From Macrostomum lignano (Eukaryota), in NCBI GenBank assembly GCA_002269645.1, contig NIVC01001001.1, forward strand, positions 248,001 through 312,000: a stretch of 64,000 nucleotides of DNA, in the 5' to 3' direction. Shown one piece after another: positions 995-51,391 of the stretch. The first letter of the stretch is position 1, and each line of letters opens with the position of its first letter. The position numbers and the translations under genes are program-made. The notes below the pieces were generated by a model. That model made no database searches. It had not been told where the DNA came from and worked only from the letters and a program-made list of their open reading frames with translations.

Positions 995-3900
995 ATTAGG
1001 CATTTCTTGGGACAAGCGTGTATAAACTGACCCGTGCTATTAGGACCAAAAATGTGTTGGGCCAGGCCCAATAAGTGCGTCCTGACACTTCCAAAAATGA
1101 ATTCTATTGAAATGAAAAAATATTCATTGGAACCGTCTTTCGATTCTCCTTTCAAAAATCAATGTGATTTTTTCATATTTTTAATCAAACACGGGGAATC
1201 TAATGATTTGCAGTGTCCTAAGAAGTTTAAAAAATTATGCGAACTGATGGTCTGATCCAACAGAACAATTGGGTCTCAAATCGGAGTTCTCGTTTTATTA
1301 CAATATTTCTTACAATATCAAGAAAGTCTACTACAAGTAACAGATAGAGGTTCTCCACAGGGCTGCCAATCGACACTTGAAAGGATCCTGACATTTGGCA
1401 TCGTGTTTACTATAAAATATGAAATAATTTAATAAAGATTTAGAATATTACAATCAAGCATACAAACCTTATAGATTTAGTATATTTAGATTTTTGCATA
1501 GAAACAGCTTGCATCTAAATTCATTAGCTTCCAATTTCACTTATACACGAAACATGGCAAATTAAGGTTACATCCGCCTGTGCCCTCGGCCATTTTAACT
1601 GAAATTCTCGTTTTCAGTCAGCTGCATTAATCTATTTGTCATATGTGAATGGGTATTAACTGACTCAAGTTAGTGACTGGAGGCCATTAACGTAAAGTGA
1701 CACTTTGAGTGAGGTAGTTTTCCGGTGGAAATTCTCACAGTCTTATGAAGCGCTTTTAGAGCAAAGAAATAAAGGGCAAAGAAAAACTTTGCATTTCCCG
1801 AGAAAACCGAGGACGAGTATTAGAGGGAAACGTTTAATCTCTAAGGCTTTAAATGACTTCCTTATTGGCCTGGGTTTGGGCAGCTATACTATGTAGCAAA
1901 ATTTTTCCTAGAATTATGATAATTATCGTCTGGTATACTGAAATGTACTGAGATACCAAGAAACTTAAGATGACTGCATGGACTACTGCTAGCACATGTT
2001 TGCGTGTCACTGTCACTGTAAAGTCGAAATCGATGACTAGTTTGGCCCAAAACTAACTACTAGGCCTTCCTGAAAAACAATTCTGCTTATCTTGGATCGT
2101 AAAGATAAACCCACGTACAGTGCAGAAGTGTTAGGACAAGCGTGTACAAGACCCAGGCAATCCCTTACCCAGGCCACGCGTACATTCCTATCGCGGCGGG
2201 GGGAAGCGGGGAGGAGAGGCGGGCGCAAGGGAGTCGGGATAAAGTTTACACTGAAGTTGAGGCCTACAAGAGGAAGAGCCAATTCTAACGGAAAGGTACA
2301 TGTAGAAGTTCCCTTTGACAAACGGCGTACTGGCGGTACTGCATATGTTCAAACGAATATAATTCATTTACGAGACCTGCACTACACAGACAAAATGTGC
2401 CACGTCACAAGAGTTTCCATGCATGACCTGGCATGAAAAGATTTGGCTAGGAACCATTACACATATGTAAGTAGAATTTAAAATTCTTTTTAAAATTTTA
2501 TGATTAAATAAAAACTTAACTGGAATTTACATATGTAACTTTTCTAAAATTCCAGATACGTTGATATCGATAAGCTACCGTTTTCTTCTATAACAAACAG
2601 ATTTGCCTTCATTGTCAAGTAAGTCTTGTCTCGTACTCGTATATGTCGTATTTTTTGTACGTTGAAAAAAATAATAAGCAGCCTAGTAATACTCTGAGCT
2701 CAGTGAAATATAAGAGAGGCGGCACGATCACCTTATTTATCAATTAATTTACAACAGCCAGTTGAGCAATCATAAGTAGGCAAAATTTACACTTCTAGGA
2801 AGAACAAATTTTACTAAAAGTTTCAATCAAAACATTTAGGAAAGAAATCTCGCATGACACATCGCCCACAGTACTAGAGACTTGGAGAAATACCATGTGA
2901 GTTTGCTGGGCAACTAATATAATATATTACTGTTATAATTCGATAGTCAAATTATTTTTCTACTCAAAGCAGTATTATTACATAACTAAAGAACAGTATA
3001 AAATGACAGCATTCTAGAACGAGAAACAAAGCTTACTGCAAAGGCAAACGCCGAAAGAAAAGCAGGGCAGAGTCAGCAACAAAAAAGAAGCTCATCTGAT
3101 TGGGAAGATGGGCGGTCAGCAAAGAGATAGGATCTCAGAAAATTGCAACTCCCAGTAACTGAAACTTAATTGCAATAAGTGTTTTGTTTTCTAGGGCATT
3201 ATTAAAACAAGCAAGCCTGCCTGCAGTCAGCTAAGGGCAAAGTAAGTTGCTGCGGCACTATCGAGAGAGTAAAATTTGTACATACTCCATCTGACTCACA
3301 CAAGCAGCACCGTTGGGACAAACTACGAGTATTTTAATTGTACAGTAAAATTTCATTGACAATGAAGCATTTATTAGAAAAGCGACATTTAAATCTGTTT
3401 TCAAACAAATCAGACAGATTTCTCAATAAGTGATTTTTCTTATGTGCGCCCACGCACAGGTTCGTCCGCATTCAAACTCGCCGCTGCATCCGTCATTTAT
3501 TTCACTTGCTGCTCACAAGCCGCAGCAGCAGCAGCAGCAGCAGCCGCTATCCGTGCAGGCAGTCAGTCTATTTGTGAATTTTCTGGTGGATCTGAAGAAA
3601 ACCCGTCCGGCACAGGATTAAAGAGAAAGAGACGATCTGTTTTGGGTGAGTATTATCTGCTGTAGAAGTATTGTACACCAGAGTACTTGTGTTACTTGGT
3701 AGAGCACAATTCAAAAGCTATGCAACAATCTCAGTGGCATTGTTGGGACACAAGCTACAAACGCAATGAATAGTAAACACAGCCCAGCCTAGCTCAAGGC
3801 TAGTAATTTGTTGGGCATTTATTGGGACATTGCAGCCAGGCCTATTTTTTGAACAGCATTTGTTGGGTCGCACTTATTGGGACAATACTGATTCTAATCG

Positions 3901-4154
3901 CGACTACTTCTGAGTTCTGACTTTTCAAAACAGACCCAGCATTAGTTGAACACGTTCTATTAAAGGGTTCCTTTATAGCCTATTAATGATTACTAAAGGC
4001 AAGCCTATCTTAATTGATTTCTTTTCCTCGCAGATTCTGAAGTCAGCAACGCCAGCGACATGCCTAAGAGACAAGAATGCGCTTTAACGATCAGCAGTGA
4101 GCATTCTGATCTCGCCGCTGCATCCGTCATTTGGTTCACTTGCTGCTGCAAGCC

Positions 4155-4226
<72 letters not shown>

Positions 4227-4836
4227 GCTATCCGTGCAGGCAGTCAGTCTATTTGTGAATTTTCTGGTGGATCTGAAGAAAACCCGTCCGGCACAGGATT
4301 AAAGAGAAAGAGACGATCTGTTTTGGGTGAGTATTATCTGCTGTAGAAGTATTGTACACCAGAGTACTTGTGTTACTTGGTAGAGCACAATTCAAAAGCA
4401 ATGCAACAATCTCAGTGGCATTGTTGGGACACAAGCTACAAACGCAATGAATAGTAAACACAGCCCAGCCTAGCTCAAGGCTAGTAATTTGTTGGGCATT
4501 TATTGGGACATTGCAGCCAGGCCTATTTTTTGAACAGCATTTGTTGGGTCGCACTTATTGGGACAATACTGATTCTAATCGCGACTACTTCTGAGTTCTG
4601 ACTTTTCAAAACAGACCCAGCATTAGTTGAACACGTTCTATTAAAGGGTTCCTTTATAGCCTATTAATGATTACTAAAGGCAAGCCTATCTTAATTGATT
4701 TCTTTTCCTCGCAGATTCTGAAGTCAGCAACGCCAGCGACATGCCTAAGAGACAAGAATGCGCTTTAACGATCAGCAGCGAGCATTCTGATCTCGCCGCT
4801 GCATCCGTCATTTGGTTCACTTGCTGCTCACAAGCC

Positions 4837-4917
<81 letters not shown>

Positions 4918-5526
4918 CTATCCGTGCAGGCAGTCAGTCTATTTGTGAATTTTCTGGTGGATCTGAAGAAAACCCGTCCGGCACAGGATTAAAGAGAAAG
5001 AGACGATCTGTTTTGGGTGAGTATTATCTGCTGTAGAAGTATTGTACACCAGAGTACTTGTGTTACTTGGTAGAGCACAATTCAAAAGCAATGCAACAAT
5101 CTCAGTGGCATTGTTGGGACACAAGCTACAAACGCAATGAATAGTAAACACAGCCCAGCCTAGCTCAAGGCTAGTAATTTGTTGGGCATTTATTGGGACA
5201 TTGCAGCCAGGCCTATTTTTTGAACAGCATTTGTTGGGTCGCACTTATTGGGACAATACTGATTCTAATCGCGACTACTTCTGAGTTCTGACTTTTCAAA
5301 ACAGACCCAGCATTAGTTGAACACGTTCTATTAAAGGGTTCCTTTATAGCCTATTAATGATTACTAAAGGCAAGCCTATCTTAATTGATTTCTTTTCCTC
5401 GCAGATTCTGAAGTCAGCAACGCCAGCGACATGCCTAAGAGACAAGAATGCGCTTTAACGATCAGCAGTGAGCATTCTGATCTCGCCGCTGCATCCGTCA
5501 TTTGGTTCACTTGCTGCTGCCAAGCC

Positions 5527-5565
<39 letters not shown>

Positions 5566-6175
5566 GCTATCCGTGCAGGCAGTCAGTCTATTTGTGAATT
5601 TTCTGGTGGATCTGAAGAAAACCCGTCCGGCACAGGATTAAAGAGAAAGAGACGATCTGTTTTGGGTGAGTATTATCTGCTGTAGAAGTATTGTACACCA
5701 GAGTACTTGTGTTACTTGGTAGAGCACAATTCAAAAGCAATGCAACAATCTCAGTGGCATTGTTGGGACACAAGCTACAAACGCAATGAATAGTAAACAC
5801 AGCCCAGCCTAGCTCAAGGCTAGTAATTTGTTGGGCATTTATTGGGACATTGCAGCCAGGCCTATTTTTTGAACAGCATTTGTTGGGTCGCACTTATTGG
5901 GACAATACTGATTCTAATCGCGACTACTTCTGAGTTCTGACTTTTCAAAACAGACCCAGCATTAGTTGAACACGTTCTATTAAAGGGTTCCTTTATAGCC
6001 TATTAATGATTACTAAAGGCAAGCCTATCTTAATTGATTTCTTTTCCTCGCAGATTCTGAAGTCAGCAACGCCAGCGACATGCCTAAGAGACAAGAATGC
6101 GCTTTAACGATCAGCAGTGAGCATTCTGATCTCGCCGCTGCATCCGTCATTTGGTTCACTTGCTGCTGCCAAGCC

Positions 6176-6237
<62 letters not shown>

Positions 6238-6238
<1 letters not shown>

Positions 6239-6330
6239 GGGACAAGAAGGCGCCCTCCTAGAGAACATCATGGGGTCCCCGGAAGTCCAAGGAGAGACCG
6301 AACGGCCAAACCTTGGAACTAACTGCCTTC
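6238..6330 (+). ncRNA. HDV-like self-cleaving ribozyme at the E1 5' end (enlarged L3)
   Basis: P1 GGGGAC/GTCCCC; P2 GAAGGCG/TGCCTTC; P3 CCC/GGG; L3 starts TCC and pairs with GG 6281-6282 (P1.1); P4 TCCAAGG/CCTTGGA; J4/2 CTAA with C6319. Confidence 0.75.
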
Positions 6331-9300
6331 CCAAACAGCGATGCCCCGCAGGGGGCGAGAGACTAAAACACGGCAGTGGAGATATCGATCACGACGTCAG
6401 AAATACCGATAACATCGACACAGTCCTTCGACTCCGCGGAGGGTGCGGTATAGCCCCCCGCAGCAAGCGGAGTGGTAGCGGGAAGAACGGCGAGGACCAC
6501 AGCCCAGAGCTCATCCTGCAATTCAATTGCAACGGCCTTCGGGCCCGTTCCACCGAGCTGGCCAAGTGGCTCCAGACTAATCGACCTGCAGCTATTCTGC
6601 TTCAAGAGACAAAACTCCGGACGGGACAAGTTTTTAACCCGCCGGACGGATACTGCGTGGCCGCTAGGTGCGACGGCCTCCCCAAGGACGCAGCCCAGCG
6701 GGGACAGGAGCCAGATGAGAGACCATCCGAAAGCAGCGCTCCCTCGGACACATGTCCGACGCCTTGGACAAGGTGTGGAGGACGTCGCCTTACTAGACCA
6801 CGATGCCGGATGCGCTGGCCGGAGGACCGCACCGAATGGTGCCCTGGATGCAAATCGGGCCGCACCGGTTGCGTTCGCAGGAACGAGCCATGGCCAACAC
6901 CGAGTCTGAATCAGGCGGATATCACAGTGATAGCAACAGAAGACGCAGGAACACACGCACCTGCACCTACGGCAGCGGCTGATGCAGCCGGGGCGACAAC
7001 GATTACAACACAAGGGGCTAGCTTGGCACCTCCTAAGAAAACAGGCTGGCAGTGCTGCAAGTGCGGCAACCAAATTAAAGGACGGCAGTATTCGGTCCGA
7101 TGCAACGGCTGCAACGACTGGTGTCACCTATCGTGTAGCGGCCTGGGCCGTAGCAACAGGTGGACAAGTGCTTTCAAAGCGGAAATGTGCAACTCCTGTA
7201 CACCTGTCCAACCGCCGCCATCACAGCCACCGGCAGAACGGAGCCCATCACCGTCATCACCGACACCACCATCACCGATACCGATACCAACAAATAAGAC
7301 TCGGAAAAACCCGATCAATCACGCGGCCCGCGGCGGGGCGATGATTCTCACCCGCTCGGACATTGCCGTTGACAACATACCGACGCCAGGAGATAAGGAA
7401 CGCGGCATGCTGGACGTCGCCGCAGCCGCCATCCACCTCAAAGACTCAAAGCCCATCACGCTCGTTTCTGTCTACGCACCACCTATCAGCGACCAGAGAG
7501 GCGAGACCTGGCACCCCCCCCTCAATCTCATTCCGGACGCCCAGCGCGTCATCATAGGGGGCGACTTTAACGCTCACGGGATTTGGGACAGCCACCAAGA
7601 GGAAGATGACAGAGGCCGCAGGGTGGAAGCTTGGGCCAGCGCAAGGAACCTGCGACTCGCTAACGGCGAGCGACACACCCGCACCAACCCGGCGACAGGC
7701 GCTTTATCCTCGCCGGATATCACCTGGACTAGCACCAATCTGCTGAGCAGCGTCGCGGACAGCTGGACAACTCAGAGTGACATGGGCTCGGATCATCTTC
7801 CCATCACGTTCCAGCTTTGCTCCGCTCACAAGCGCCCGACCAGGCAGAGGCGCCCTAGGACTGCAAAGTGGAGCTACCGAAAGGCGGACTGGAGTGGTTT
7901 TAAACAGGAGCTCGCCACCATCGATGCCGAAAGGGAACAATACCCGACGGAAGGTGTCGAGGCCGAGCACCTCCACGCCCTTATCTGCGACGACATCCTG
8001 AAGGCGGCGAGCCATAACATCCCTAAAGGGGCTCTCCCGAGGACCAAACCCTTCTGGAGCGAGGAGTGCGAGAAGGCCACCCAGGCCTGCAAAGAGGCGC
8101 GCCGGACAGCTGAAACTGAACCGTCCGAACCCAACATTGCAGCCTTCAAAATGGCCAGAAACCGAGTTCGGTCCACCATTCGCAAGGAAAAGGAAAAAGC
8201 CTGGAACGAGAAGGCGGCTCAGCTAGACGTTAACAGTGACCTCTTCCGCCTGCTGAAGAACATGAGGGGGGACGGGCACACCCCCGCCAGCAGTACATCT
8301 ATTACCAGGCACCAAACGGGTGGTACCGCGCCCAGCAGACCAGCGCGAACTAAACTGGAAAAAGCGAACCTGTTCTGCCAGATGTACAGCGCGGTCTCCA
8401 GAGTACCAAAACGCCCAGAAGACAGACTGATCAACAAAAAGGCCTATGAAGCGGCCAGTGCCCGCTGTTGCGATGCCGACAATCGCCAGGGAATCTGCCA
8501 GCCCTTCAACCCCACGGAGTACCGGAACGCCGTCCGAGCCCTGAAATCTGGAAAGGCACCCGGACAGGACGGAGTCAGTAATGATATGCTGAAACACTTA
8601 CCACCGTCCACTGACAAAAGACTCCTGGAGCTCATTAACAGGTCATGGATGGGAGGCAAGTGCCCATGGCAGTGGAGAAAGGCTACCATTATCCCGATTC
8701 CCAAGAAAGGGAAGGACGCCAGCAAGCCGGAATCATATCGCCCAATCGCCCTAACCAGCTGCGTGGCTAAGCTCGCAGAGCGCATGGTCCTCCAGCGCCT
8801 CCGTTACGCCCTGGAGGCCTCGGGTCGGCTGACCGCCAGCCAGGCGGGCTTCCGACGGGGGCGTTCCACTGAGGAGCTCATTGCCGACATCTCCCAGGAG
8901 ATTTTCGACAAGCTCGAGGCCACCCCGCACATCAGGTCAGTGCTCTGCCTGCTTGATTTTAGCCGCGCTTACGACAGAGTCTGGAGGGCGGCTCTCTACT
9001 CGAAGCTGCGAGACTTGGGAGTGCCAGCCGACGTCATCCGGTGGATCAAGGCCTTCCTGTCAGACCGAAGAGCCCGCGTGCGCGTCGGCGACTGCACCAG
9101 CAAAGAACGCATCTTCCGGGAAGGACTACCACAGGGGTCGGTGCTCGCCCCCACACTGTGGTTAGTCTACGTCAACGATCTGGCTGATGCGGTGCTAAAC
9201 GCCGCCGCGGGTGTTTCCATCAAACTTTATGCCGATGACAGCGCCCTCCTGACCTCTAACAGGTCTCTGGACACATGTGAAGAGAAGCTGCAACCCGCGC

Positions 9301-11047
9301 TGAACGCCGTCTCACAGTGGTGCAAGGAATGGAAAGTGGAGCTCAGCGTGGAAAAGAGCGTGTACGGCACTTTCACGCTGGACGCAAAGGAATCAAACGG
9401 CAAAAAGAGACTCAACCTGCTCATCGATGACAAGCCAATAGCCTTTGACCCAGCCCCGAACTACCTCGGTGTTCGCCTAGACGGTCAACTCAATTTCGCG
9501 CAGCACGCCGCGACAGTCCGCGCCAAGATGTGCGCCAGACGCCGACCGCTCGCAGCGATGGCCGGCAGGAGCACCGGAGCTGATCTACAAACGATCCGAA
9601 CAGCCTACATCAGTACCGTCCGCGCTGTGGCCGAGTACGCCGCAGGTACCTGGCTATGCGGCGCCGCCCCCTCCACCAGACGAGCTATTGAACAGCAGCA
9701 GAACGCGTGCGCGAGACTGATTACGGGATGTATCATGCCGACCAACATCCGCTCAGTCCTACAACTGGCCGGGCTCACACCGCTCTCATTCATCGCGTCC
9801 GAGAGGGCGGCACGCCTAAGGGAAAGAGTCCTCAGACTCGACCCGAGTGTCTCGGCGGGACAAGTAGCCTTGCGGAACACCAGGCCTAGACTGAAAAACC
9901 GTACCTACGAAGCTTTGGCACGCGATCACGGCCGCACCCACGGAGACGGCGGCGCCGACGACGAAGCACAGCCGAACTCGCTGAACCTCATCGACCCGCG
10001 GGACGCCACCCGCCCCTTCCGGAACTGCTGGAGGAGGGCGGCACTGGAGCTGCCGTCGGTTGCCATATTGGATTCCCACAAAAGAGGCGACCCGGTAAGC
10101 CCCGGCATCCCGCCGTGGGAGTGCGACACACGGGACATTAACATCCGCCTGGACATCTCGGCCCGATGCCGCCGCACGGACCCCCAGGAGTCCCGGAGCG
10201 CGGCGGCAACGGAGTTTCTGCAGTCACTGCCTGAGGCTGACATCAGCGTGTGGACAGACGGATCGGTGGCGGACGGCACCGGACCCGGCGGCAGCGCCGC
10301 TATAACCTGCACGAACTTGGCGAGCCATGTGCGCAAGGCCCCGGCCGGAATCATCTGTAGCTCATTTGACGCAGAAATGATAGCCATCCGCGAAGCACTG
10401 GTTTTTATTAAGAACAACCGCAGCCCGAGCGAAAAGAAGATTCGCCTATGTAGCGACTCTTTATCGTCACTGACAGCACTAGGGGCCGGACCACTAGCCC
10501 AGGCGACTAAGACCGGTACGGACTGCTGGCGCCACATGCTAGACATCAACGAAACGGCCGACATAGAACTAATCTGGGTGCCAGCCCACTGCGGCATCAG
10601 CCTTAATGAAGCGGCGGACCGCGCGGCCGGCATGGCAAGAGGCTTGCCCCAAGAGGAAGTGCCCATCTCCTTCAACGCCGCAAAAGCAGCCATTCGCCGC
10701 GATCGCCGGACCCTGGAGAAAGAAACCCTGCCGCAACCCTGGCCGGACTTCAAAGCGAGAGACCGGCGGGAGCAAACGGCGGTGTGCCAGCTTCGCGCAG
10801 GCATGACGATGCTCTGCGCCGAGACCCAGCACCGATTCGGTATGATCGATAATCCGCAGTGCCCGGACTGCGGAGAACTCGACGACAGCGCCCATGCGCT
10901 ACTTCACTGCCACCGGGAGACGCTCGACGGATGGCCCTGGTCGGGAACGATCACGAGGAGCTCCTCCGGAACCCGGGAAAATGTCTCTCGCTCCTTCGGA
11001 GCATGGGGCGATGGCCCCCGCAAATCTCGGCGCCGCCGCGCCGGTAA
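6270..11047 (+). CDS. E1 single-ORF polyprotein (MGSPEV...; leader-VLRLRGG-APE with Cys-rich/PHD insert-RT-RNaseH-Zn knuckle), one frameshift near 10908
   Basis: ATG at 6270 is homologous to the E2 ATG at 37386. The true C-terminus (LLRSMGRWPPQISAPPRR*, TAA 11045-11047) is in another frame and matches the E2 C-terminus. Confidence 0.85.
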
Positions 11048-11721
11048 AGCGAGCGCTGAAGACGAAGAAGAAGAAGAAGAAGAAGAAGAAGCAGCAGCAG
11101 CAGCAGCAGCCGCTATCCGTGCAGGCAGTCAGTCTATTTGTGAATTTTCTGGTGGATCTGAAGAAAACCCGTCCGGCACAGGATTAAAGAGAAAGAGACG
11201 ATCTGTTTTGGGTGAGTATTATCTGCTGTAGAAGTATTGTACACCAGAGTACTTGTGTTACTTGGTAGAGCACAATTCAAAAGCTATGCAACAATCTCAG
11301 TGGCATTGTTGGGACACAAGCTACAAACGCAATGAATAGTAAACACAGCCCAGCCTAGCTCAAGGCTAGTAATTTGTTGGGCATTTATTGGGACATTGCA
11401 GCCAGGCCTATTTTTTGAACAGCATTTGTTGGGTCGCACTTATTGGGACAATACTGATTCTAATCGCGACTACTTCTGAGTTCTGACTTTTCAAAACAGA
11501 CCCAGCATTAGTTGAACACGTTCTATTAAAGGGTTCCTTTATAGCCTATTAATGATTACTAAAGGCAAGCCTATCTTAATTGATTTCTTTTCCTCGCAGA
11601 TTCTGAAGTCAGCAACGCCAGCGACATGCCTAAGAGACAAGAATGCGCTTTAACGATCAGCAGTGAGCATTCTGATCTCGCCGCTGCATCCGTCATTTGG
11701 TTCACTTGCTGCTGCCAAGCC

Positions 11722-11784
<63 letters not shown>

Positions 11785-12393
11785 CTATCCGTGCAGGCAG
11801 TCAGTCTATTTGTGAATTTTCTGGTGGATCTGAAGAAAACCCGTCCGGCACAGGATTAAAGAGAAAGAGACGATCTGTTTTGGGTGAGTATTATCTGCTG
11901 TAGAAGTATTGTACACCAGAGTACTTGTGTTACTTGGTAGAGCACAATTCAAAAGCAATGCAACAATCTCAGTGGCATTGTTGGGACACAAGCTACAAAC
12001 GCAATGAATAGTAAACACAGCCCAGCCTAGCTCAAGGCTAGTAATTTGTTGGGCATTTATTGGGACATTGCAGCCAGGCCTATTTTTTGAACAGCATTTG
12101 TTGGGTCGCACTTATTGGGACAATACTGATTCTAATCGCGACTACTTCTGAGTTCTGACTTTTCAAAACAGACCCAGCATTAGTTGAACACGTTCTATTA
12201 AAGGGTTCCTTTATAGCCTATTAATGATTACTAAAGGCAAGCCTATCTTAATTGATTTCTTTTCCTCGCAGATTCTGAAGTCAGCAACGCCAGCGACATG
12301 CCTAAGAGACAAGAATGCGCTTTAACGATCAGCAGCGAGCATTCTGATCTCGCCGCTGCATCCGTCATTTGGTTCACTTGCTGCTCACAAGCC

Positions 12394-12426
<33 letters not shown>

Positions 12427-12654
12427 GCTATCTGTGCAGCAGTCAGTTAATTCATGAGTTTTCTGGCGGAGCTGGTTATTTTTTAATTTTCTGAATCGAG
12501 AAGCCGATTAACTGTTGTGTGCTTCACTGGAATATTATTCAGAGGACGCATTTTTTTGCAGTCTGTTTCTAATAAAATCCGGTGCAATGACCGCGGTAGA
12601 GCTCTAGCATTTGCTTTTTATAGTATTTGTGTATATTCTTTTTCAAGCTATGCT

Positions 12655-14019: not shown

Positions 14020-15010
14020 AGTGACCCTGACATTGTGACCCTGACATTCTGACCCTGACATTGTGACCCTGACATTGTGACCCTGACATTGTAACCCTGA
14101 CATTACATTATGACCCTGACATTCTGACCCTGACATTGTGACCCTGACATTGTGACCCTGACATTCTGACCCTGACATTGTGACCCTGACATTGTGACCC
14201 TGACATTCTGACCCTGACATTCTGACCCTAACATTGTGACCCTGACATTCTGACCCTGACATTCTGACCCTGACATTGTGACCCTGACATTCTGACTCTG
14301 ACATTCTGACCCTGACATTGAGACCCTGATATTCTGACCCTGACATTCTGACCCTGACATTGAGACCCTGACATTGTGACCCTGACATTGAGACCCTGAT
14401 ATTCTGACCCTGACATTCTGACCCTGACATTGAGACCCTGATATTCTGACCCTGACATTCTGACCCTGACATTATGACCCTGACATTGTGACCCTGACAT
14501 TCTGACCCTGACATTCTGACCCTGACATTGTGACCCTGACATTCTGACCCTGACATTGTGACCCTGACATTCTGACCCTGACATTCTGACCCTGACATTG
14601 AGACCCTGACATTCTGACTCTGACATTCTGACCCTGACATTGAGACCCTGATATTCTGACCCTGACATTCTGACCCTGACATTGAGACCCTGACATTGTG
14701 ACCCTGACATTGAGACCCTGATATTCTGACCCTGACATTCTGACCCTGACATTGAGACCCTGATATTCTGACCCTGACATTCTGCCCCTGACATTATGAC
14801 CCTGACATTGTGACCCTGACATTCTGCCCCTGACATTCTGACCCTGACATTCTGACCCTGACATTCTGACCCTGACATTCTGACCCTGACATTCTGACCC
14901 TGACATTCTGACCCTGACATTCTGACCCTGACATTCTGACCCTGACATTCTGACCCTGACATTCTGACCCTGACATTCTGACCCTGACATTCTGACCCTG
15001 ACATTCTGAC
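14020..15010. repeat. 14-bp satellite (TGACCCTGACATTS)n
   Basis: Direct reading; explains the repetitive MSGSECQ ORFs. Confidence 0.95.
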
Positions 15011-17119: not shown

Positions 17120-21620
<4,501 letters not shown>

Positions 21621-21714: not shown

Positions 21715-22812
21715 TACTGCTCATAAACCACCCTTAGAATTGCTCATAAAGCATCCCTAGAACCGCTCATAAACCACTCAGAGAATCGCTGATAAACCAC
21801 TCTAAAAATCGCTCATAAACCAACCCTATAATTGCTCATAAACCACCAATAGAATGGCTCATAAACCAATCCTAAAATCGCTCATAAACCGCCCCTAGAA
21901 TCGCTCAAAAAACACCCCTAGAATCGCTAATAAAACACCCCTAGAATCGCTCATAAAACACCCCTATAATCGCTCATAAACCACCCCTAGAATCGCTCAT
22001 AAAGCATCCCTAGAACCGCTCATAAACCACTCAGAGAATCGCTGATAAACCACTCTAAAAATCGCTCATAAACCAACCCTATAATTGCTCATAAACCACC
22101 AATAGAATGGCTCATAAACCAATCCTAAAATCGCTCACAAACCACCCCTAGAATCGCTCATAAACCACCCCTAGAATCGCTCATAAAGCATCCCTAGAAC
22201 CGCTCATAAACCACCCCTAGAATCGCTCATAAAACACCCCTAGAATCGCTGATAAACCACCCCTAGAATCGCTCATAAAACACCCCTAGAATCGCTGATA
22301 AACCACCCCTAGAATCGCTCATAAACCACCCCTAGAATCGCTCATAAAACACCCCTAGAATCGCTGATAAACCACCCCTAGAATCGCTCATAAACCACCC
22401 CTAGAATCGCTCATAAAACACCCCTAGAATCGCTCATAAACCACCCCTAGAATCGCTCATAAAACACCCCTAGAATCGCTCATAAACCACCCCTAGAATC
22501 ACTCATAAACCACCCCTGAAATCGCTTGTAAAACACCCCTAGAATCGCTCATAAAACACCCCTAGAATCGCTCAAAAAACACTCCTAGAATCGCTCATAA
22601 ACCACCCCTGAAATCGCTTGTAAAACACCCCTAGAATCGCTCATAAAACACCCCTTAAATCGCTCATAAACCACCCCTAGAATCGCTCATAAAACACCCC
22701 TAGAATCGCTCATAAACCACCCCTGGAATCGCTCATAAAACACCCCTAGAATCGCTGATAAACCACCCCTAGAATCGCTCATAAACCACCCCTAGAATCG
22801 CTCATAAAACAC
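21715..22812. repeat. ~23-bp satellite (CTCATAAACCACCCCTAGAATCG)n
   Basis: Direct reading. Confidence 0.95.
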
Positions 22813-23211
22813 CACTTGAATCGCCAGTTAAAAGTACCAGTACCACTCTACATTCACAGAAATTGTAATTCAAACGAATTTCCAAAGTTCGAGTTTTGCA
22901 CTCTGTAATAATAATAAGAATTTTTAATAAATTGTTTAATTCTAAATTGCAACAATGCAAAGTAGAAACGAACTTGCAGTTAAATTCAGTCATTCGTTGT
23001 ACACACAAGGTTCTGCGCATTGTTTTAAACATATCTAACCGTTAGTGCAATATAATTTTTGTCAATCTCTTTAATTGTTAACTCTTGAGTGTAGTAAATT
23101 TTGCTTTTGTTAAAATGACGGACAATCGATATAACAAACTAATATTTTGTCGCATTTTTTGTAAAAACAATACGCTCGTATTGAAAAATGAACGCGCCAT
23201 TGAAAGCGGTC

Positions 23212-23901
23212 TGTCTGACATTATTGATAAACATGTCTGATAGGATTGATAAACATGTCTGACAGGATTGATAAACATGTCTGACAGGATTGATAAACAT
23301 GTCTGATAGGATTGATAAGCATGTCTGACATTATTGATAAACATGTCTGACAAGATTGATAAACATGTCTGACATTATTGATAAACATGTCTGACAGGAT
23401 TGATAAACATGTCTGATAGGATTGATAAACATGTCTGACAGGATTGATAGGCATGTCTGACATTATTGATAAGCATGTCTGACATTATTGATAAACATGT
23501 CTGATAGGATTGATAAACATGTCTGACATTATTGATAAACATGTCTGATAGGATTGATAAACATGTCTGACATTATTGATAAACATGTCTGACAGGATTG
23601 ATAAGCATGTCTGACAGGATTGATAAACATGTCTGACAGGATTGATAAACATGTCTGACAGGATTGATAAGCATGTCTGACATTATTGATAAGCATGTCT
23701 GACATTATTGATAAGCATGTCTGACATTATTGATAAACATGTCTGATAGGATTGATAAACATGTCTGATAGGATTGATAAACATGTCTGACATTATTGAT
23801 AAACATGTCTGACAGGATTGATAAACATGTCTGATAGGATTGATAAGCATGTCTGACATTATTGATAAACATGTCTGACATGATTGATAAACATGTCTGA
23901 T
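23212..23901. repeat. 22-bp satellite (GTCTGACAGGATTGATAAACAT)n
   Basis: Direct reading. Confidence 0.95.
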
Positions 23902-37185: not shown

Positions 37186-37335
37186 GGGAATCGGTCACCG
37201 CTCCTGGCTCAGGGGCGGTGGATGTGGCTCGGTCCGGCCCTCTGTGCTCAGCCTTTGTCGCTGGCTCTGTCAGCGGTAGGGGTTTGGTACCTGGTCCGGT
37301 TATTTCGAGCTCGGTCCGCAGTCAACAACAACAAC
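37074..37335 (+). mobile_element. Element A: ~260-bp non-autonomous RIME/SINE-like element with 5' HDV-like ribozyme and (CAA)n tail
   Basis: 5' end is homologous to the E3 5' end. 3' end TCCGCAGT(CAA)n matches E3 TCCGCACT(CAA)n. CAACAGCAGCAG is duplicated at 37062-37073 and 37332-37343. No coding capacity. Confidence 0.75.
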
Positions 37336-37353
37336 AGCAGCAGCACCCGCCGG

Positions 37354-37443
37354 GGGGACAAGAAGGCACCCTCCTAGCGAACACCATGGGGTCCCCGGAC
37401 GCCCCCGGTCCGCGCAACAGGACCGAGGCGACTAATGGCCTTC
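37354..37443 (+). ncRNA. HDV-like ribozyme of E2
   Basis: P1 GGGGAC/GTCCCC starts exactly at the TSD-defined 5' end. P2 GAAGGC/GCCTTC; P3 CCC/GGG; P4 CGCC..GGTCC/GGACC..GGCG; J4/2 CTAA with C37432. Confidence 0.78.
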
Positions 37444-38832
37444 ACAATCAGCGATGCTCCATATGGAGCGAGAGAGCCAATACTGCGTGCATGGAGACCG
37501 AACCTCAGCAACAACAACAACAAGGGCAACAGATCTCGACGACGCCCCCCATGCTGAGAGCCTACCTACTGAACAAGTCCTGCGACTGCGAGGCGGTTGC
37601 GACCATCCTGACCGCCGACCCAAGCACGGCCGCCGGAGGAATACCGCGGAGCCGGGCCCAGAGCTCATCCTACAGTTCAACTGTAACGGCGTCAAGAGCC
37701 GCCATACTGAGCTGGCTAAATGGCTCCACGTCAATCGTCCGGCTGCGGTCCTACTGCAGGAAACGAAGCTTGCCAGCGACACCGATTACATCCCTCCTAC
37801 CGGATACTACGTCGCCGCGCGCTGCGACGGCCTTCCTAAAGAGGCCGCCGGCACCCGGGCCACCGAGAACGAGGAAGGGGGGGCACCTCTCCAGCCCACC
37901 CAACCCAGTGGCCCCGAAGCTAACCCTAACGAAGGGACCAGCGCGGACAACTGCCCCACGCCATGGGCAAACTGCGGCCGCAAGATTAAGCGCCCACGCT
38001 GCCGCATCCGTTGGCCGGCTGACAAGAATGATAAGGCGGAGTGGTGCCGCGGCTGCCGCTCAGGCAGAACCGCCTGCACCCGCAGAGACGAGCCGTGGCC
38101 ACAACCACCGCAACCGCAGCCACAGGCCCAGACCCAGAGTGCGCAACACAATCGTGAGCCGACCGACAACCAACAGGAGCAGGCACGGAGGACCGCCGCC
38201 TCGAAGCCGCCAATAACTCGGCCCAAGAACAGGACGAACAAAGCGACCCACACCAGAGGAGGCACCCTGATCCTAGTGCGCGCCGACATTGCGTCCGACA
38301 CTACGCCATCGCCGCCGGACAACGAACGCCAACTGCTAGACTGCGCCACCGCCACCATCCACCTCAAAGGCCAGGAGCCGATCACGCTGGTTTCCCTCTA
38401 CGCACCACCGACCAGCAACCAACGGGGGGAAACCTGGCAACCCCCGCTTCATCTGGTCCCGAACGCCGCTGGCCCTACCGTCGTCGCCGGCGACTTCAAC
38501 GCCCACGGCAGTTGGGACCGGCACCAAGACGAAGATGAGCGCGGCAAAATAGTGGAAGCCTGGGCGACCTCCCGCAACCTGAGACTTGCAAACGGCGACT
38601 ACCATACGCGAACTAACCCAGCAACAGGAGGCAAATCTACTCCGGACCTTACCTGGACCAGCAACAACCTCCTGCAAGGCATCGCAGAGAGCTGGACGAC
38701 CCTCGACGATCTGGGGTCCGACCATCTGCCCATCTCCTTCCCGGTCCAGAGACACCCCAGAGCGCCGCGGAAGGGCAAGAACCTGCCACGGGCCACGTGG
38801 TGCTTCCGCAAAGCGGACTGGGGGAGCTTTAA

Positions 38833-40899
38833 CCTCTTCCTGACGAATTGAAAACATGTCATCTCAATTGCGAACGGGTGGCCTGCATCGCAGGCCATAG
38901 AAAAATTTCCAAGTTTTGTGAACTTCTGATCTCCTCACTTAAAGACGGATGACCTGCTATGCAGGCCATGGCTGCAGGCAACAACGATATTGTCTATGGG
39001 CGTGTTTGTACTTAGTGTCACAGCTCCTGACTGAAAAAAATTGTACTGGAGTTCTCACTGCATTGACAGGTTAAATAGTTTTAAAGTTATGTCATAGACA
39101 GTTGGTTTGACTGTCCACTACTAAAGACCTGGAGACTTATGACTTCTCATGAATGTGGTTATGAAAGTCACTGTAAAAAAACCTAGCATAAGACTTTGGA
39201 TTTTGTAACAATTGGCATACAGAATACGAGCAGTTATACATGGAATCACTCAACGAAGAACCCGATTTTGAGCAGTTGATGTCTGATGACGAGGATCAAG
39301 ATTCCACTACTGACTCGTCCGATGAGGCTTCCGATCTAGACAATGCATCCGTGGATGAAGAAATAGGTGGCTGGCAACGCGTCGTACCCGGAGAGAATGG
39401 TTTGCAGGAGCCAGATTCGGAATTCATGGCGACCTCTGGCTTGCATCCGGATTTGGTGGCGCCAGCTGATCCAGACAACAATATTCAATGGTTTTTTGAC
39501 CTATTTTTAACTGACGCGCTGATGAACAAGCTGTGCGAGTGGACCAACAAGAAAGCTTGGTTTGAGTTAGAAAGGTTTCAAGCTGAAGGAGGTGAGCCAG
39601 CTGAGGTGCCACCAATCTTGAAGACTTGGAAGAATTGCACATTGAACGAGATCAGGAAGGTGATAGCGACCAACTTTTTCATGGGGCTGAGCAAGAAGCC
39701 GGAATTGCACCTTTACTGGTCTACGGACCCGTTCGACCAGTGCCCTTTCATGCAGCAACCTTCAAGCCTGTCAAGAGATCGATATAAACAAATCATGCAC
39801 TTCCTGCGCTTCTACGACTGCACCGCAATCGCAGACTTGAACGACCCTCTAAGAAAGATTCGACCGTTTCTTAGAATTGTGCAGCAGGCAATGCAGAATA
39901 CTTATTTGCCAGAGCAGAACATCTGCATTGACGAATCCCTAGTGTTGTACAAAGGACGCCTGATTTTTCGTCAGTACATACCAAGCAAGCGAAACAAGTT
40001 TGGCATCAAAATGTACTGTCTATGTGAATCCCAGACAGGGTACATGTGAAACTTTTTAATTCACAGTACGGATGCGGAAAACGGAAAATTTGGACAAGGG
40101 CTGGAGTGTGACCACCTTTCTATCAGCGAGCGCATTGTGGTTGAGTTAAGCAGCCAGATTTTAAACCTTGGCTACCACCTGTTCACGGACAGCTGGTTTT
40201 CTTCGGCTCGACTGGCCGAGTTCCTGCTGTCTAAATCCACATTTCTGACGGGCACAGTTCGACAAGATCGCGGGATCCCCGACTGTCTACGGCAGCTGGC
40301 TCTTCCTGCCAACTCATGTGCATTTGCTCGAAAAGAGGGCCTGCTTGCTGTGAAGCTTGTTGATCGAAAGCAAAGTGGAGTTAAGACGGTTAACTTCATC
40401 GACACCAGGAGCATTGCTGGTACCGCCGAGATCACCCGAATTCGACGTGGCGGTCAGCAAGAGGTGGTAACAAAGCCGATTACAGCTGTTGTTTACTCAT
40501 TTCTGTTGAAACCTCTGCGTACTCGTATTTTAATAAATTTGTAAAGTTCTTCTTGTTGAAACCGCGGGTACTTTTTGCTATTTGTCAGATTAAAAAGTAA
40601 AAAATATTTCCTTTAATAACGGTTTGTTCTCTTCCATAAATAAAATTATCTTGAACCACAGCGTAGTACCGTGTCTTTGCTTCTGTTGAATTAGCGGATG
40701 GCCTGCCATGCAGGTCATCAGTCCTTAACTGCAGTGCCACACAGATATCTATGGTCAATCGTTCGGCTCAGCAGAATTAGCCGTCTGGAATAGTGAGCTA
40801 GAGTTGACATTAATTTACCCACAGACTGCACGGCATAAAAAACCGTTTTGAGTGGAAAGGCTCTATGGCCTGCTATGCAGGCCATCCGTCGGGTTACTG
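38833..40899 (+). mobile_element. piggyBac-superfamily DNA transposon nested in E2
   Basis: TTAA at 38829-38832 and 40900-40903. Excision restores the E2 frame ADWGSF|KDELTKID (E1: ADWSGFKQELATID). Inverted subterminal palindromic motifs at both ends. Confidence 0.9.
39240..40544 (+). pseudogene. piggyBac (PGBD4-like) transposase, premature stop and 3' truncation
   Basis: CIDESL, YIPSKRNKFGIK, FTDSWF, GTVR motifs. TGA at 40047-40049 where Trp is expected, with the frame continuing. The third catalytic GGVD motif is absent. Confidence 0.85.
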
Positions 40900-43800
40900 T
40901 TAAGGACGAACTCACTAAGATCGACGGCCAAAGGGCTGACTACCCAACTCACGGCGTCCAACTCGCACATCTTCACGCCATCATCTGTAACGACATTCTA
41001 ACGGCCGCTGCCCATAACATACTCAAAGGGGCCAGAACTGCTGCGAAACCATTCTGGACTGACGCCTGCGCCCAAGCCACCCGGGAGTGCAAAGAAGCCC
41101 GGCACGTCACCGAGCTGTCCCCGAGCGACGACAACCTGGCTAGGTTCAAAGCGGCCCGTAACAACTCCAGAAAGGTGAACCGCCAGGAGAAACGCCGCGC
41201 CTGGAGCGAGAAGGCAGCTGAGCTCACCATCAACAGCGACCTTTTCCGCACTCTGCGCCAGATGCGTGGCGATGGCCCCAAACCAAATAGCGGCGCCTCC
41301 CTCCAGAGAAAGAAGACGGGGCAGCAAGAACCATCTCGGCCGGCCCGCACCAACCTGGAGAAGGCCAACCTGTTCTGTCAGCAATACGCCGCTGTCTCTA
41401 GAGTTAAAGGAGGCCCCAAGACGCCCACACCAATCAAGCCGCGAGAGCAGCCCTCAACTCCAGCTGCACGTGCAATGGCTCACGCACCGACATGTGCTCC
41501 GCCTTCAGCCTGACCGAATACCGCAGCGCTGTGCGCTCGCTCAAATCCGAGAAGGCACCAGGCCCGGACGGAGTTACCAACGACATGCTTAAAAGACTCC
41601 CACCGACCACGGACCTGAGGCTCCTGGACCTCATCAACCGGTCTTGGAAGGAAGGAGACTGCCCGATGCAATGGAAGAAATCGGTCATCATACCTATCCC
41701 CAAGAAAGGGAAAGACCCTAGTAACCCGGAGTCCTACCGCCCAGTGGCACTCACCAGCAGCATCGCCAAACTGGCCGAACGGATGGTGCTCCAACGCCTG
41801 CGCTTTGCCCTCGAGAATTCTGGCCGCCTCAGCAGTACCCAGGCCGGCTTCCGCCGCGGCCGCTCTACTGAGGAACTCATCGCGAGCACCTGCCAAGACA
41901 TCTTTGACGGTCTGGAGGCGGTCCCACACCTGCGGTCAGTGCTGTGCCTTCTCGACTTTAGTCGTGCTTACAATCGGGTCTCGAGGGCTGGGCTGATCGC
42001 CAAGCTGAAAAAGCTCGGCATCCCTAACGACGTGCTCCGCTGGATCCGGAGCTTCCCTGCCGACCGACGTTCCCGCGTACGAGTCGGCAATTGCCTGAGC
42101 AATGAAAGAATCTTCAAGGAAGGCCTCCCCCAGGGCAGCGTGCTGGCTCCCCTGCTCTGGGTCGTCTACATCAACGACCTGGACACGGAGATTAAAGAGG
42201 CCCATACGGACTGCAAACTGAAGCTCTACGCAGACGACAGCGCCCTCCTGGCCACCGACCGGAGCCTCGACGCCTGCGCTGCGAAGCTCCAACCTGCCCT
42301 GGACGCTGTGCACAAATGGTGTCAGACGTGGAAAGTGGAGTTGAGCGCTGCGAAATGCGTCTACGGAACCTTCACCCTGGACCCCAAGGAAACCAACGGA
42401 AAGAAGAAGGTCAGCCTCACCATCGGTGGCCAACCGCTGGCCTATGACCCAGCGCCACGCTACCTGGGAGTGCGCCTCGACGACCAGCTCGCATTCAACA
42501 AACAGGGGGCCGACGTCCGCGCTCGTATGTGCGCTCGGCGCCGCCCGCTTGCGGCGCTAGCCAACCGCAGCACCGGAGCCGACCACCATACGCTGAGAGC
42601 CGCCTACGTCAGCACTGTCAGGGCTGTCGCCGACTACGCCGCGGGCACCTGGCTCTGCGGGGCAGCCCCCTCAACAAGGCACTCCATCGAGCGTCAACAG
42701 GCTGCCTGTGCCAGGATCATCACAGGCTGCATCCTACCTTCGGACACGCGAAGCGTCCTCCGTCTTGCCGAGCTCCCACCGGTCAGCCACGTCGCCTCCG
42801 AAAGAGCCGCCCGCCTCCGGGAAAGGATCCTGAGATTGGGCCCAGGCGCAGCAGCATACGAACCTGCTACCAGGAGCACGCGCCCGAGGCTGAAGAACCG
42901 CACCTACGAGGCTGGGCAGAGGAGACCAACGACAACGGACGCCCAAATTGACACGCCCCACATCGACCTCAGAGACACTAGGCGCCCTTTCCGCAACTGC
43001 TGGCGCCGAGCGGCACTAGAGATGCCAGCCAGCGTCGAGCTCGACCAGTACATCAGAGACGACATATGTAGTCCCGGTATCGCTCCCTGGGCGGCACACA
43101 CGGACAGAATCCGGTTCTGTCTGGAGGCAGCCTCGAGGTGCAGCAAATCAGACCCGTCCGCCGACCGGAACGCAGCCGCCCGCGACACCCTGGAGGACCT
43201 ACCTGAAGCAGACATCAACATTTGGACGGACGGCTCCGTTGCCGACGGCACAGGGCCAGGAGGCAGCGCCGCCATCATCGGTACTAACCTGGTGACCTAC
43301 GTCCGGAAGAGCCCAGCTGGCCGCTTCTGCAGCTCATTCGACGCTGAGATGCGCGCTATCAAAGACGCCCTCACCTTTGTCGCGGAGAAGATCGCCCCTC
43401 GCGCAGCCCGCATCCGGCTGTGCAGCGACTCGCTATCGTCGCTCACGGCCCTGCAAGCGGGCCCCCTAGATCAGCGCACCGAGAGTGGCCTCTCCTGCTG
43501 GCGTTTCCTCATCGGCCTGGGCACCTGCGACCTCAATGATATTGACCTCGCCTGGGTCCCTGCCCACTGCGGCATACCCGCTAACGAAGCCGCGGACAGA
43601 GCCGCGAACGCCGCAGCCCGCTCTCCGCAAACCACGGCTGCCATTTCGCTGGGCGCTGCCAAGGCTGCCATCCGCCGTGACCGCCGTGCGCTGGACGACA
43701 GCGCTATGCCCCCGGCCTGGCCAACCTTTCACGCTAGAAGCCGGACCGAGCACACGGCGGTCTGCCAACTCCGAGCCGGTGCCTCAATGCTCGCCGCCGA

Positions 43801-44053
43801 GGTCCGACACCGTTTCGGCCTGACGGACTCCCCGCTCTGCCAGGACTGCGGGGCACCGGACTCGAGCCTGCACGCGATCTACAGCTGCCCGAGGGGGGAC
43901 GCGCATCGCACTCGCCTGGTCAGCACTGAAGTGGAGCGCCTCCTTACCGAACCGGGCTTGGCCCTCTCGCTCCTCCGGAGCATGGGGCGTTGGCCCCCGT
44001 CTATTTCGGCGCCGCCGCGCCGCTGACGAGCGCTGAAGAAGAAAGAAAGAAAG

Positions 44054-44160
44054 CACCCGCCGGCCTTTACTGCCGACCTGGAGAAGCTTCTCCAGGCCCT
44101 AATAGGCGCCGCGTCTTCGTCGCGGGGGGAGGTGTCCCTATGGGATATCAAAGAGCGCCT
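44054..44160 (+). ncRNA. HDV-like ribozyme of E3
   Basis: Same architecture as element A, with compensatory changes in both J1/2 hairpins and P4 (GTGTCCC/GGGATAT). L3 TCTTCGT; J4/2 CAAA with C44149; P2 AGGCGC/GCGCCT. P1 pairing is imperfect in this copy. Confidence 0.7.
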
Positions 44161-51040: not shown

Positions 51041-51391
51041 AATCATTAATCATTAATCATTAATCATTAATCATTAATCATTAATCATTAATCATTATTA
51101 TTAATCATTAATCATTAATCATTAATCATTAATCATTAATCATTATTATTAATCATTAATCGTTAATCATTAATCATTAATCATTAATCATTAATCATTA
51201 ATCATTAATCATTAATCATTAATCATTAATCATTAATCATTAATCATTAATCATTATTATTAATCATTGATCGTTAATCATTAATCATTAATCATTAATC
51301 ATTAATCATTAATCATTAATCATTAATCATTAATCATTAATCATTAATCATTAATCATTAATCATTAATCATTAATCATTATTATTAATCA
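51041..51391. repeat. (AATCATT)n 7-bp satellite inserted in pPolB coding sequence
   Basis: The coding frame CYN|HHRKNRAGRSRC is restored by removing it. Confidence 0.9.

Follow-up and report, generated by a model that had tools for sequence, protein, structure and literature searches.

The DNA analysed here is a 64,000-nt stretch of the Macrostomum lignano genome (GenBank assembly GCA_002269645.1, contig NIVC01001001.1, positions 248,001 to 312,000 of the forward strand), which we call the window and by whose numbering all positions are given. It contains two related retrotransposons without long terminal repeats (non-LTR), E1 and E2. The first 90-93 nt of each thread onto the nested double pseudoknot of the hepatitis delta virus (HDV) ribozymes, and in both the loop L3 of that fold is enlarged and carries an ATG. 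The elements and their target-site duplications (TSDs) are

6238-11090, + strand: E1, non-LTR retrotransposon with one open reading frame (ORF) for an apurinic/apyrimidinic endonuclease (APE), reverse transcriptase (RT) as well as RNase H; (GAA)9 tail at 11064-11090
6218-6237, + strand: E1 upstream TSD, (GCA)6GC, inside a host (CAG)n tract with empty paralogous sites
11091-11110, + strand: E1 downstream TSD
37354-44052, + strand: E2, non-LTR element with 66-75% nucleotide identity to E1, degenerate, with frameshifts and a (GAA)n-like tail
37343-37353, + strand: E2 upstream TSD, GCACCCGCCGG, 11 bp; downstream copy at 44053-44063

The E1 ORF has Pfam matches to Exo_endo_phos/Exo_endo_phos_2, RVT_1 (2e-34) and RNase_H (9e-11). 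Its three domains share one ORF, it has TSDs, and its 3′ tail is a simple repeat, which makes it an APE-type non-LTR element with RNase H.

Two HDV-like ribozyme folds

In both elements the helices follow in the HDV order P1, P2, P3, (L3), P3′, P1′, P1.1, P4, J4/2, P2′, and there are zero mismatches in the core helices. The parts of the two folds are

6238-6330, + strand: E1 HDV-like ribozyme, 93 nt, recognized by its fold and by a covariance model from foreign relatives (22.3 bits, E 0.005)
6238-6243 GGGGAC / 6275-6280 GTCCCC, + strand: E1 P1, 6 bp
6244-6245, + strand: E1 J1/2, AA
6246-6251 GAAGGC / 6325-6330 GCCTTC, + strand: E1 P2, 6 bp, then one spacer base before P3
6253-6255 CCC / 6272-6274 GGG, + strand: E1 P3
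6256-6271, + strand: E1 L3, 16 nt, TCCTAGAGAACATCAT (also given as UCCUAGAGAACAUCAU)
6257-6258 CC / 6281-6282 GG, + strand: E1 P1.1, L3 positions 2-3 with the GG after P1′
6286-6292 / 6311-6317, + strand: E1 P4
6318-6324, + strand: E1 J4/2, containing CUAA
6319, + strand: E1 candidate catalytic cytosine (C75 equivalent), first base of CUAA in J4/2
37354-37443, + strand: E2 HDV-like ribozyme, 90 nt (covariance model 17.5 bits, E 0.05)
37354-37359 / 37391-37396, + strand: E2 P1, GGGGAC/GTCCCC
37362-37367 / 37438-37443, + strand: E2 P2, GAAGGC/GCCTTC
37369-37371 / 37388-37390, + strand: E2 P3, CCC/GGG
37372-37387, + strand: E2 L3, 16 nt, UCCUAGCGAACACCAU
37373-37374 / 37397-37398, + strand: E2 P1.1, CC/GG
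37400-37403/37427-37430 plus 37406-37411/37420-37425, + strand: E2 P4, CGCC..CGGTCC/GGACCG..GGCG
37431-37437, + strand: E2 J4/2, CUAA with C37432, the candidate catalytic cytosine

The double pseudoknot had been proposed in a sequence-only reading of this DNA, and it holds up: all helices are present, and a model built from relatives recovers both copies. The same reading took the 6-bp P1 to be unusual, which it is not, 6 or 7 bp being the typical length of P1 in R2 ribozymes (PMC3774820). The cytosine of the catalytic position is present in both copies (C6319 and C37432), each time followed by UAA.

How stable is such a fold? For E1, the nested part (-21.5 kcal/mol) plus the P2 duplex (-8.0 kcal/mol) is to be compared with a pseudoknot-free minimum free energy (MFE) of -27.9 kcal/mol; for E2 the corresponding values are -31.4, -8.0 and -32.6 kcal/mol. 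In this energy model the nested fold plus P2 duplex is competitive with the pseudoknot-free MFE in both copies. The pseudoknot-free MFE of the full ribozyme is itself uninformative (z about -0.35). The P4 hairpins, folded in isolation, have z = -2.3 (E1) and -3.0 (E2); they are unrelated in sequence, and each of them pairs.

In E1, the host CAG-repeat base just 5′ of the predicted cleavage site, C6237, can pair with G6281. That pair makes a P1 of 7 bp at the expense of P1.1, and it is the alignment that the covariance model picked.

Element 5′ ends and insertion sites

G6238 is the first base after the upstream TSD of E1, and it is also position 1 of P1. Likewise, G37354 is the first base after the upstream TSD of E2 and position 1 of its P1. 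The E2 end is known to within 2 nt, because the last bases of the TSD, GG, could equally belong to E2; within that limit it falls on the first G of P1, where the sequence-only reading had put it, and the E1 TSD agrees too. Two independent insertions start at the predicted cleavage site. By fold, catalytic-position cytosine, L3 core and coincidence with the element 5′ ends, the E1/E2 RNA is classed as an HDV-like ribozyme whose cleavage is predicted.

For E1 the site before insertion can be read from empty paralogous sites, which are uninterrupted host repeat units (e.g. 3519-3557). The host sequence is a tandem repeat of about 680 bp with at least 7 units (window 3468-6237 and 11091-12428), in one of which E1 sits; each unit contains a (CAG)n tract, whose length varies, and has edges that resemble splice sites (..cag| and |gtgagt). 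E2 sits in a third and more distant element, E3, within its 5′ region. E1 and E2 both have A|GCA at the 3′ junction, in CAG repeats or adjoining them; E3 is in a CAA/CAG tract, with a different junction. These sites hint at microsatellite-directed insertion.

A covarying ribozyme family in metagenomic relatives

Close relatives of E1 and E2 are absent from the protein collection, but a distinct group shares the Cys-rich insert in the endonuclease. The best relative has 36% identity in APE and 46% over a near-full-length RT/RNase H. We examined 14 contigs of this group, and nine, from TARA and other metagenomes, have a 5′ ribozyme. The amino acid identity of these nine to E1 is 36% for APE and, in local alignments, roughly 40-54% for RT/RNase H. 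Each has a compact HDV-like ribozyme of 62-83 nt upstream of the endonuclease-coding region, located as follows.

L001:1740-1822, L002:2636-2698, L003:128-189
L084:53-123, L085:52-120, L087:1255-1319
L089:60-130, L092:1682-1756, L093:1564-1626

There is no ribozyme match in L090; L091 looked 5′-truncated, and L086 is probably 5′-truncated. L001 likewise has a (GAA)n tail, and its TSD, GATCGGGGGTG, again adjoins P1, with an uncertainty of 2 nt.

In these relatives P1, P2 and P4 differ in sequence yet stay paired. P3 is CCC/GGG, except in L089, where it is GCC/GGC. L3 has 7 nt, UUCACGU and variants (type U-N-C-R-C-G-N). Across the six relatives used for statistics, 95.3% of cells are paired, versus about 50% with partners slid; 11 pairs have a compensatory change, and none of 500 shuffles reaches the observed value. 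A MAFFT alignment misplaces the L3 insert of E1 and E2, so for the joint comparison we used a hand segmentation, checked against the sequences. In this table of nine sequences including E1 and E2, pairing holds in 58/58 cells of P1, 52/53 of P2, 27/27 of P3 and 49/49 of P4 (186/187 in all), and E1 and E2 contribute P1 and P2 sequences of their own. The catalytic-position cytosine is at a constant distance from P2′ in 9/9 of these ribozymes, and also in the model alignments of L092 and L093.

The sequence-only reading had seen covariation in the P4 stems of E1 and E2. Both P4s do pair, but two sequences with no alignable positions can only tell us that pairing is kept; column-by-column covariation is a different matter, and it is the clade that provides it, in P1, P2, P3 and P4.

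The covariance model R1 was trained on the ribozymes of the six relatives only, with neither E1 nor E2 in the training set. In the window it ranks E1 first (22.3 bits, E 0.005) and E2 second (17.5 bits, E 0.05), and it aligns both at full length, with the extra bases as an insert in L3. E1 and E2 are homologous to this covarying family. In the 128 kb of both strands, a strict descriptor that allows an L3 of 6-20 nt matches at E1 and E2 and nowhere else. A search with a relaxed L3 had been suggested by the sequence-only reading, and within the window descriptor and covariance model alike recover the two copies. On shuffled windows the strict descriptor gives 0.32 matches on average, so that the motif alone is weak evidence, and the weight comes from position and comparison. 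Looser descriptors were abandoned, as they give many spurious matches both in the window and in 80 loci. Among those 80 JGI metagenome loci (L004-L083), distant APE relatives, there is no ribozyme upstream of the APE match.

The relatives also have a feature that E1 and E2 do not: in 7/7 relatives read (all but L092 and L093), the ribozyme is followed, a few hundred nt further 3′, by a 2A peptide, D[IV]ExNPGP. In the three that were translated, L001-L003, nothing interrupts the long ORF across the ribozyme, and no AUG within the ribozyme is in frame. L001 and L002 have an ATG in J1/2, which was considered as a conserved start embedded in the ribozyme and rejected, as it is out of frame with the 2A-APE ORF; it is absent from L003, L084, L085, L087, L089, L092 and L093. 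The L3/P3′ sequence of the relatives is CACGTGGGG, with CACGTG or CGTG in it; in most of them CGTG lies at about +24 to +27.

Selection on the fold

E1 and E2 are about 30% diverged, 66-75% identical overall. Against this background the ribozyme outside P4 is identical at 53/58 positions (P about 9e-5 at 70% background), and the synonymous sites of codons 1-5 are invariant. P4, on the other hand, is wholly replaced between the two copies with its pairing kept, while the peptide that it encodes is completely changed. The comparison shows purifying selection on the core of the putative ribozyme. The 16-nt L3 is common to both copies, and so its expansion predates their split; a nearly identical core and a P4 that re-paired after divergence then argue that the fold was kept under selection together with the long loop. 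Read from these two copies, the pattern is the one expected of a functional RNA fold, and not of a decaying relic or of protein-level constraint.

The enlarged L3 and its start codon

The first six bases of L3, UCCUAG in E1 and E2, are an HDV-type core, with a U at the 5′ end, then the CC that forms P1.1, and a G as the sixth base. In E1, U6256 and G6261 are the equivalents of U20 and G25, and C6257-C6258 serve P1.1. After UCCUAG comes a 10-nt extension, AGAACAUCAU in E1, where the relatives have one base, which makes a net insert of 9 nt. Among the 11 ribozymes, L3 has 16 nt in E1 and E2 only, and 7 nt in 9/9 relatives. The two loops depart from the usual length of about 7-8 nt while having the UCCUAG core and a canonical P1.1 (GG/CC), more canonical than that of the relatives.

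Around an ATG whose G is the first base of P3′, the extension has the form of a Kozak context (AACAUCAUGG in E1, AACACCAUGG in E2), so the start codon straddles the L3/P3′ boundary. The sequence-only reading described just this 16-nt L3 with its ATG, and the sequences are as it said.

6270-6272, + strand: E1 L3/P3′ ATG, strong Kozak (A at -3, G at +4), first ATG of a 1653-codon frame
37386-37388, + strand: E2 L3/P3′ ATG, perfect Kozak context (CACCAUGG), out of frame with the APE ORF
6331-6347 (E1) and 37444-37460 (E2), + strand: stretch directly 3′ of the ribozyme, CCAAACAGCGATGCCCC in E1 and ACAATCAGCGATGCTCC in E2, nearly identical

Does the 3′ half of the ribozyme then also encode the N-terminus of the protein, as the sequence-only reading held? 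For E1 it does, in that the L3 ATG opens the 1653-codon APE-RT-RNase H frame. For E2 it does not: relative to E1 there are 2 extra nt between GCGAGAGA and GGAGAC, which put the L3 ATG out of frame. Because E2 has other lesions, this frameshift, judged from two sequences, is likely to be one more lesion in a dead copy. MGSPDAPG..., given earlier as the N-terminus of E2, would belong to an ancestor, and is not encoded by the E2 copy. The stretch just 3′ of the ribozyme has a second ATG, at 6341 in E1 and 37454 in E2, with a poor Kozak context and with CAGCGATGC invariant. The one in E2 is in frame with the endonuclease ORF; the one in E1 opens 23 codons only.

The internal structure of L3 amounts to 0 kcal/mol, that is, the extension is unstructured, and an L3 hairpin was rejected. 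Also rejected was a pairing, seen by eye, of CAUC 6266-6269 with a downstream GAUG 6340-6343, which E2 breaks (U to C). A search with the E1-type L3 pattern gave one chance match in the GTDB genomes, in a Dehalococcoidia metagenome-assembled genome, and none in IMG/VR. In the literature searched we found neither a described case of an initiator AUG inside L3 nor any passage on the L3 lengths that are tolerated.

Comparison with known systems

For R2, L1Tc and others it is established that HDV-like ribozymes set the 5′ ends of retrotransposons (PMC6765202, PMC3774820, PMC3185411, PMC5814959), and a part of such ribozymes in initiating translation of retrotransposon RNA is an established proposal (Ruminski 2011, as reviewed in PMC6765202). 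How do E1 and E2 compare with them?

The L1Tc/ingi element of Trypanosoma cruzi, with its Pr77-L1TcRz, has a ribozyme at +1 and a single APE-RT-RNase H ORF, as have E1 and E2. Its cleavage defines the 5′ end, the role that we propose here, and its TSDs are usually 12 bp (11-20 bp in E1/E2). The likeness goes further for the relatives, which have the 2A peptide, a weak P1.1 of 1-2 bp, and CGTG at about +24 to +27 (PMC5814959, PMC3185411); the CGTG promoter element of Pr77 is at +25 to +28 (PMC5814959). With a ribozyme in the first 77 nt, a 2A and a single AP-RT-RNase H ORF, L1Tc/ingi is the closest architectural match for the clade of the relatives, which suggests that an L1Tc-like 5′ module of ribozyme plus 2A exists well outside trypanosomatids. 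E1 and E2 depart from L1Tc in their 16-nt L3 with AUG, and in their insertion next to CAG/CAA microsatellites. They have no CGTG in the first 93 nt, no 2A (there is no NPGP motif in the E1 ORF, nor any 2A peptide in either element), and a (GAA)n tail instead of poly(A), so the marks of a Pr77-type module are missing. In addition, there is no trypanosomatid protein among the best 120 of 312 matches of the RT search. For these reasons we do not assign E1 and E2 to the L1Tc/ingi clade.

R2 resembles E1 and E2 in its 5′ nested double pseudoknot, its P1 of 6-7 bp and its variable P4, and also in having few invariant nucleotides besides the catalytic cytosine and a proposed role in translating uncapped RNA; it is a promoter-less, co-transcribed element, as E1 and E2 would be too (PMC3774820, PMC6765202). 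It differs in having a restriction-like endonuclease and a ribosomal DNA target, where E1 and E2 are APE-type with a microsatellite target. The R2 ribozymes described have a short L3, altered spacing being noted only in Nasonia.

With the genomic and antigenomic HDV ribozymes and that of CPEB3, E1 and E2 share the helix order, a 2-bp GG/CC P1.1, and a C followed by NAA in J4/2. The L3 core is UCCUAG in E1/E2 and UCCUCG in HDV. The HDV and CPEB3 ribozymes have an L3 of 7-8 nt and a G.U wobble as the first P1 pair, which is G-C in E1/E2. Other departures from HDV are two extra bases between CUAA and P2′, and the fact that the 3′ two-thirds of the RNA are also coding. Families with HDV-like ribozymes, as Ruminski et al. 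2011 reportedly list them, include R2, R4, R6, SART, Baggins and RTE.

What does the 5′ RNA do?

We consider it probable that E1 and E2 belong to a non-LTR family inserted beside CAG repeats, with a (GAA)n tail, whose RNA starts with an HDV-like ribozyme in its first 90-93 nt and is predicted to cleave. The element would be transcribed within a longer host or read-through transcript. The double pseudoknot would then fold and cleave directly 5′ of G1, at 6237/6238 in E1 and 37353/37354 in E2, and the precise 5′ end so made would be carried over into later insertions. The E1/E2 lineage would have lost the N-terminal 2A peptide used by its relatives, and the 9-nt expansion at the 3′ side of L3 would supply an AUG in Kozak context. 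With that, translation of the single ORF would start inside the ribozyme, 33 nt from the 5′ end. The simplest reading may be a change of translation strategy, in which a 2A-trimmed leader was dropped and an AUG of its own was gained inside the ribozyme.

A number of points weigh against such an active ribozyme. Its L3 is about twice as long as that of HDV and of 9/9 relatives, and it is at the active site, so that the expansion could make catalysis slower or stop it altogether; taken by itself, a P3 of 3 bp is a weak closure for a loop of 16 nt (-3.3 kcal/mol). Upstream pairing of the C6237-G6281 type lowers cleavage in L1Tc and R2 ribozymes (PMC3185411), and so the insertion context may modulate the processing of E1. 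The long-L3 type is known from two copies, mutually non-independent. In E2 it is the ATG at 37454, and not that of L3, that shares the frame of the endonuclease ORF; E1 has a C-terminal frameshift, so that activity is demonstrable for neither copy. The E-values from the covariance model, 0.005 and 0.05, are modest, and their calibration is rough. Rfam has no match at gathering threshold at the ribozyme sites in the window, where its only matches are to CAG repeats, and its HDV-type models miss both sites even at E <= 10 in two 300-nt regions; this is a weak negative, because covariance models cannot represent pseudoknots and an L3 insert is expected to be penalised.

Could the ribozyme have been retired? 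The expansion of L3 might have inactivated cleavage, with the structure kept for another job: recruiting ribosomes like an internal ribosome entry site (IRES), binding the protein that the element itself encodes, or serving in the DNA as an internal promoter like that of L1Tc. Transcription starting at +1 would in that case account for the 5′ end at G1. We find this rather unlikely. The insertion lies in the catalytic loop, there is a Kozak-context AUG inside the fold, the first 77 nt of L1Tc are both +1 promoter and ribozyme (PMC5814959), R2 protein binds the ribozyme pseudoknot, and HDV-like ribozymes have been proposed as IRESs (PMC6765202). And yet the catalytic-position cytosine, the CUAA of J4/2, UCCUAG and the GG/CC P1.1 have been kept in both copies despite about 30% divergence, and the CGTG found in the L3/P3′ of most relatives is absent from E1 and E2, so that a possible promoter signal is missing. 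It is far less probable that the helices are incidental to a needed N-terminal peptide (MGSP...TN.L..QRC) encoded by the 5′ 90 nt. From 6270 onward the sequence is indeed within the E1 ORF, and MGSP, TN and QRC are common to E1 and to the E2 frame of the L3 ATG; but the most conserved part is the 32 nt upstream of that ATG, the synonymous positions of codons 1-5 are invariant, P4 conserves its pairing and not its peptide, the E2 frame does not continue into the APE domain, and in the relatives the reading frame is set differently against the homologous fold. Hardest of all to credit is a GC-rich 5′ untranslated region that satisfies a permissive HDV descriptor by chance. The rate of descriptor matches on shuffled windows, the spurious matches of looser descriptors and the silence of Rfam would all allow for it. 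What speaks against it is that both matches are exactly at TSD-defined 5′ ends, that an independent covariance model ranks E1 and E2 first and second, and that the architecture matches that of the relatives down to the C-to-P2′ spacing.

The preferred reading, a cleaving 5′ ribozyme, leaves a further question: why does L3 hold an AUG? One answer would be that L3 expanded in order to hold a Kozak-context start codon, in place of the open ORF and downstream 2A of the relatives examined; a single 93-nt RNA would then order 5′ processing first and translation second, and its active-site loop would be an initiation site. As the AUG straddles L3 and P3, ribozyme fold and 40S/80S engagement would be mutually exclusive. 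Alternatively, the fold might present the AUG directly to the ribosome, like a compact IRES. We regard this reading of the expansion as unlikely, and any coupling of folding or cleavage to translation initiation as speculation.

The general finding here is ordinary, since HDV-like ribozymes at retrotransposon 5′ ends are already well known. What is new is that an active-site L3, normally 7-8 nt, is 16 nt and appears to be kept under selection. If the long-L3 RNA does cleave, then descriptors that fix L3 at 7-8 nt miss members, and the active site tolerates a wider range of structures, including a doubled L3. Also new is the strong-Kozak start codon inside L3, where the closest relatives have no AUG and those examined further have a downstream 2A. 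E1 and E2 versus their relatives are a natural design pair for the question of how uncapped, ribozyme-processed long interspersed element RNAs start translation; if the proposal is true, one and the same loop of an HDV-like ribozyme would be both active site and place of translation initiation. Finally, the uncharted marine-metagenome APE-RT-RNase H elements with 5′ ribozyme plus 2A are new as well, and suggest for this arrangement a much greater age, or a wider distribution, than that of trypanosomatids.

Coding regions and other features of the window

The E1 APE domain is split by a Cys-rich/PHD insert. Within it we observe a PHD-like zinc finger, CCKCGNQIKGRQYSVRCNGCNDWCHLSCSG, at window about 7030-7170 (aa about 255-300), which E2 does not have; in the relatives, PHD-like fingers are N-terminal to the endonuclease. 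A frameshift about 130 nt before the normal E1 stop, TAA 11045-11047, puts that stop out of frame, and the expected ending ...LLRSMGRWPPQISAPPRR-TAA sits in another frame. The ORF runs on to 11231, reading the (GAA)9 tail as poly-Glu and the host (GCA)n as poly-Ala before a stop at 11229-11231. Translation of E1 by in-frame fusion to a host exon was considered and is unsupported: by eye, the longest host frame reads the repeat as GCA, and the E1 frame reads it as CAG. In E2, a piggyBac-like insertion lies roughly at 38850-40900, between the endonuclease and RT regions, and its ORF at 39240-40049 is a piggyBac-type transposase fragment (Pfam DDE_Tnp_1_7, 2e-38).

37319-37342 plus 44064-48620: E3, third non-LTR element, APE-RT-RNase H ORF 44939-48607, 29% amino acid identity to E1

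E3 is the target into which E2 inserted. Its TSD, TCAACAACAACAACAGCAGCAGCA, implies that E3 also landed in a CAA/CAG microsatellite. Upstream of its APE domain are PHD-like Cys clusters and a 2A-like DIETNPGP motif (44298-44321). E3 has a candidate ribozyme of its own at 44087-44160, to which model R1 gives a weak match (44097-44160, 16 bits, E 0.1). Its P2 would be AGGCGC/GCGCCT, its P3 GCG/CGC, L3 UCUUCGU and J4/2 CAAAGA. P1 needs several G.U pairs, overlaps a perfect palindrome, CTGGAGAAGCTTCTCCAG, and sits some 30 nt inward of the 5′ end that the TSD defines. Probably, then, the candidate is either a ribozyme in decay or a match by chance.

Minisatellites crowd the sequence between the elements, at 12647-32787 and 51041-51391 of the window. 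Among the tandem repeats are

14022-15010: minisatellite, 14-bp unit, 70 copies
18842-19747: minisatellite, 15-bp unit, 60 copies
20669-21035: (ACT)123
21719-22824: minisatellite, 23-bp unit, 48 copies
23212-23900: minisatellite, 22-bp unit, 31 copies

The 60 copies of the 15-bp unit account for the long ORFs found on both strands at 18842-19747.

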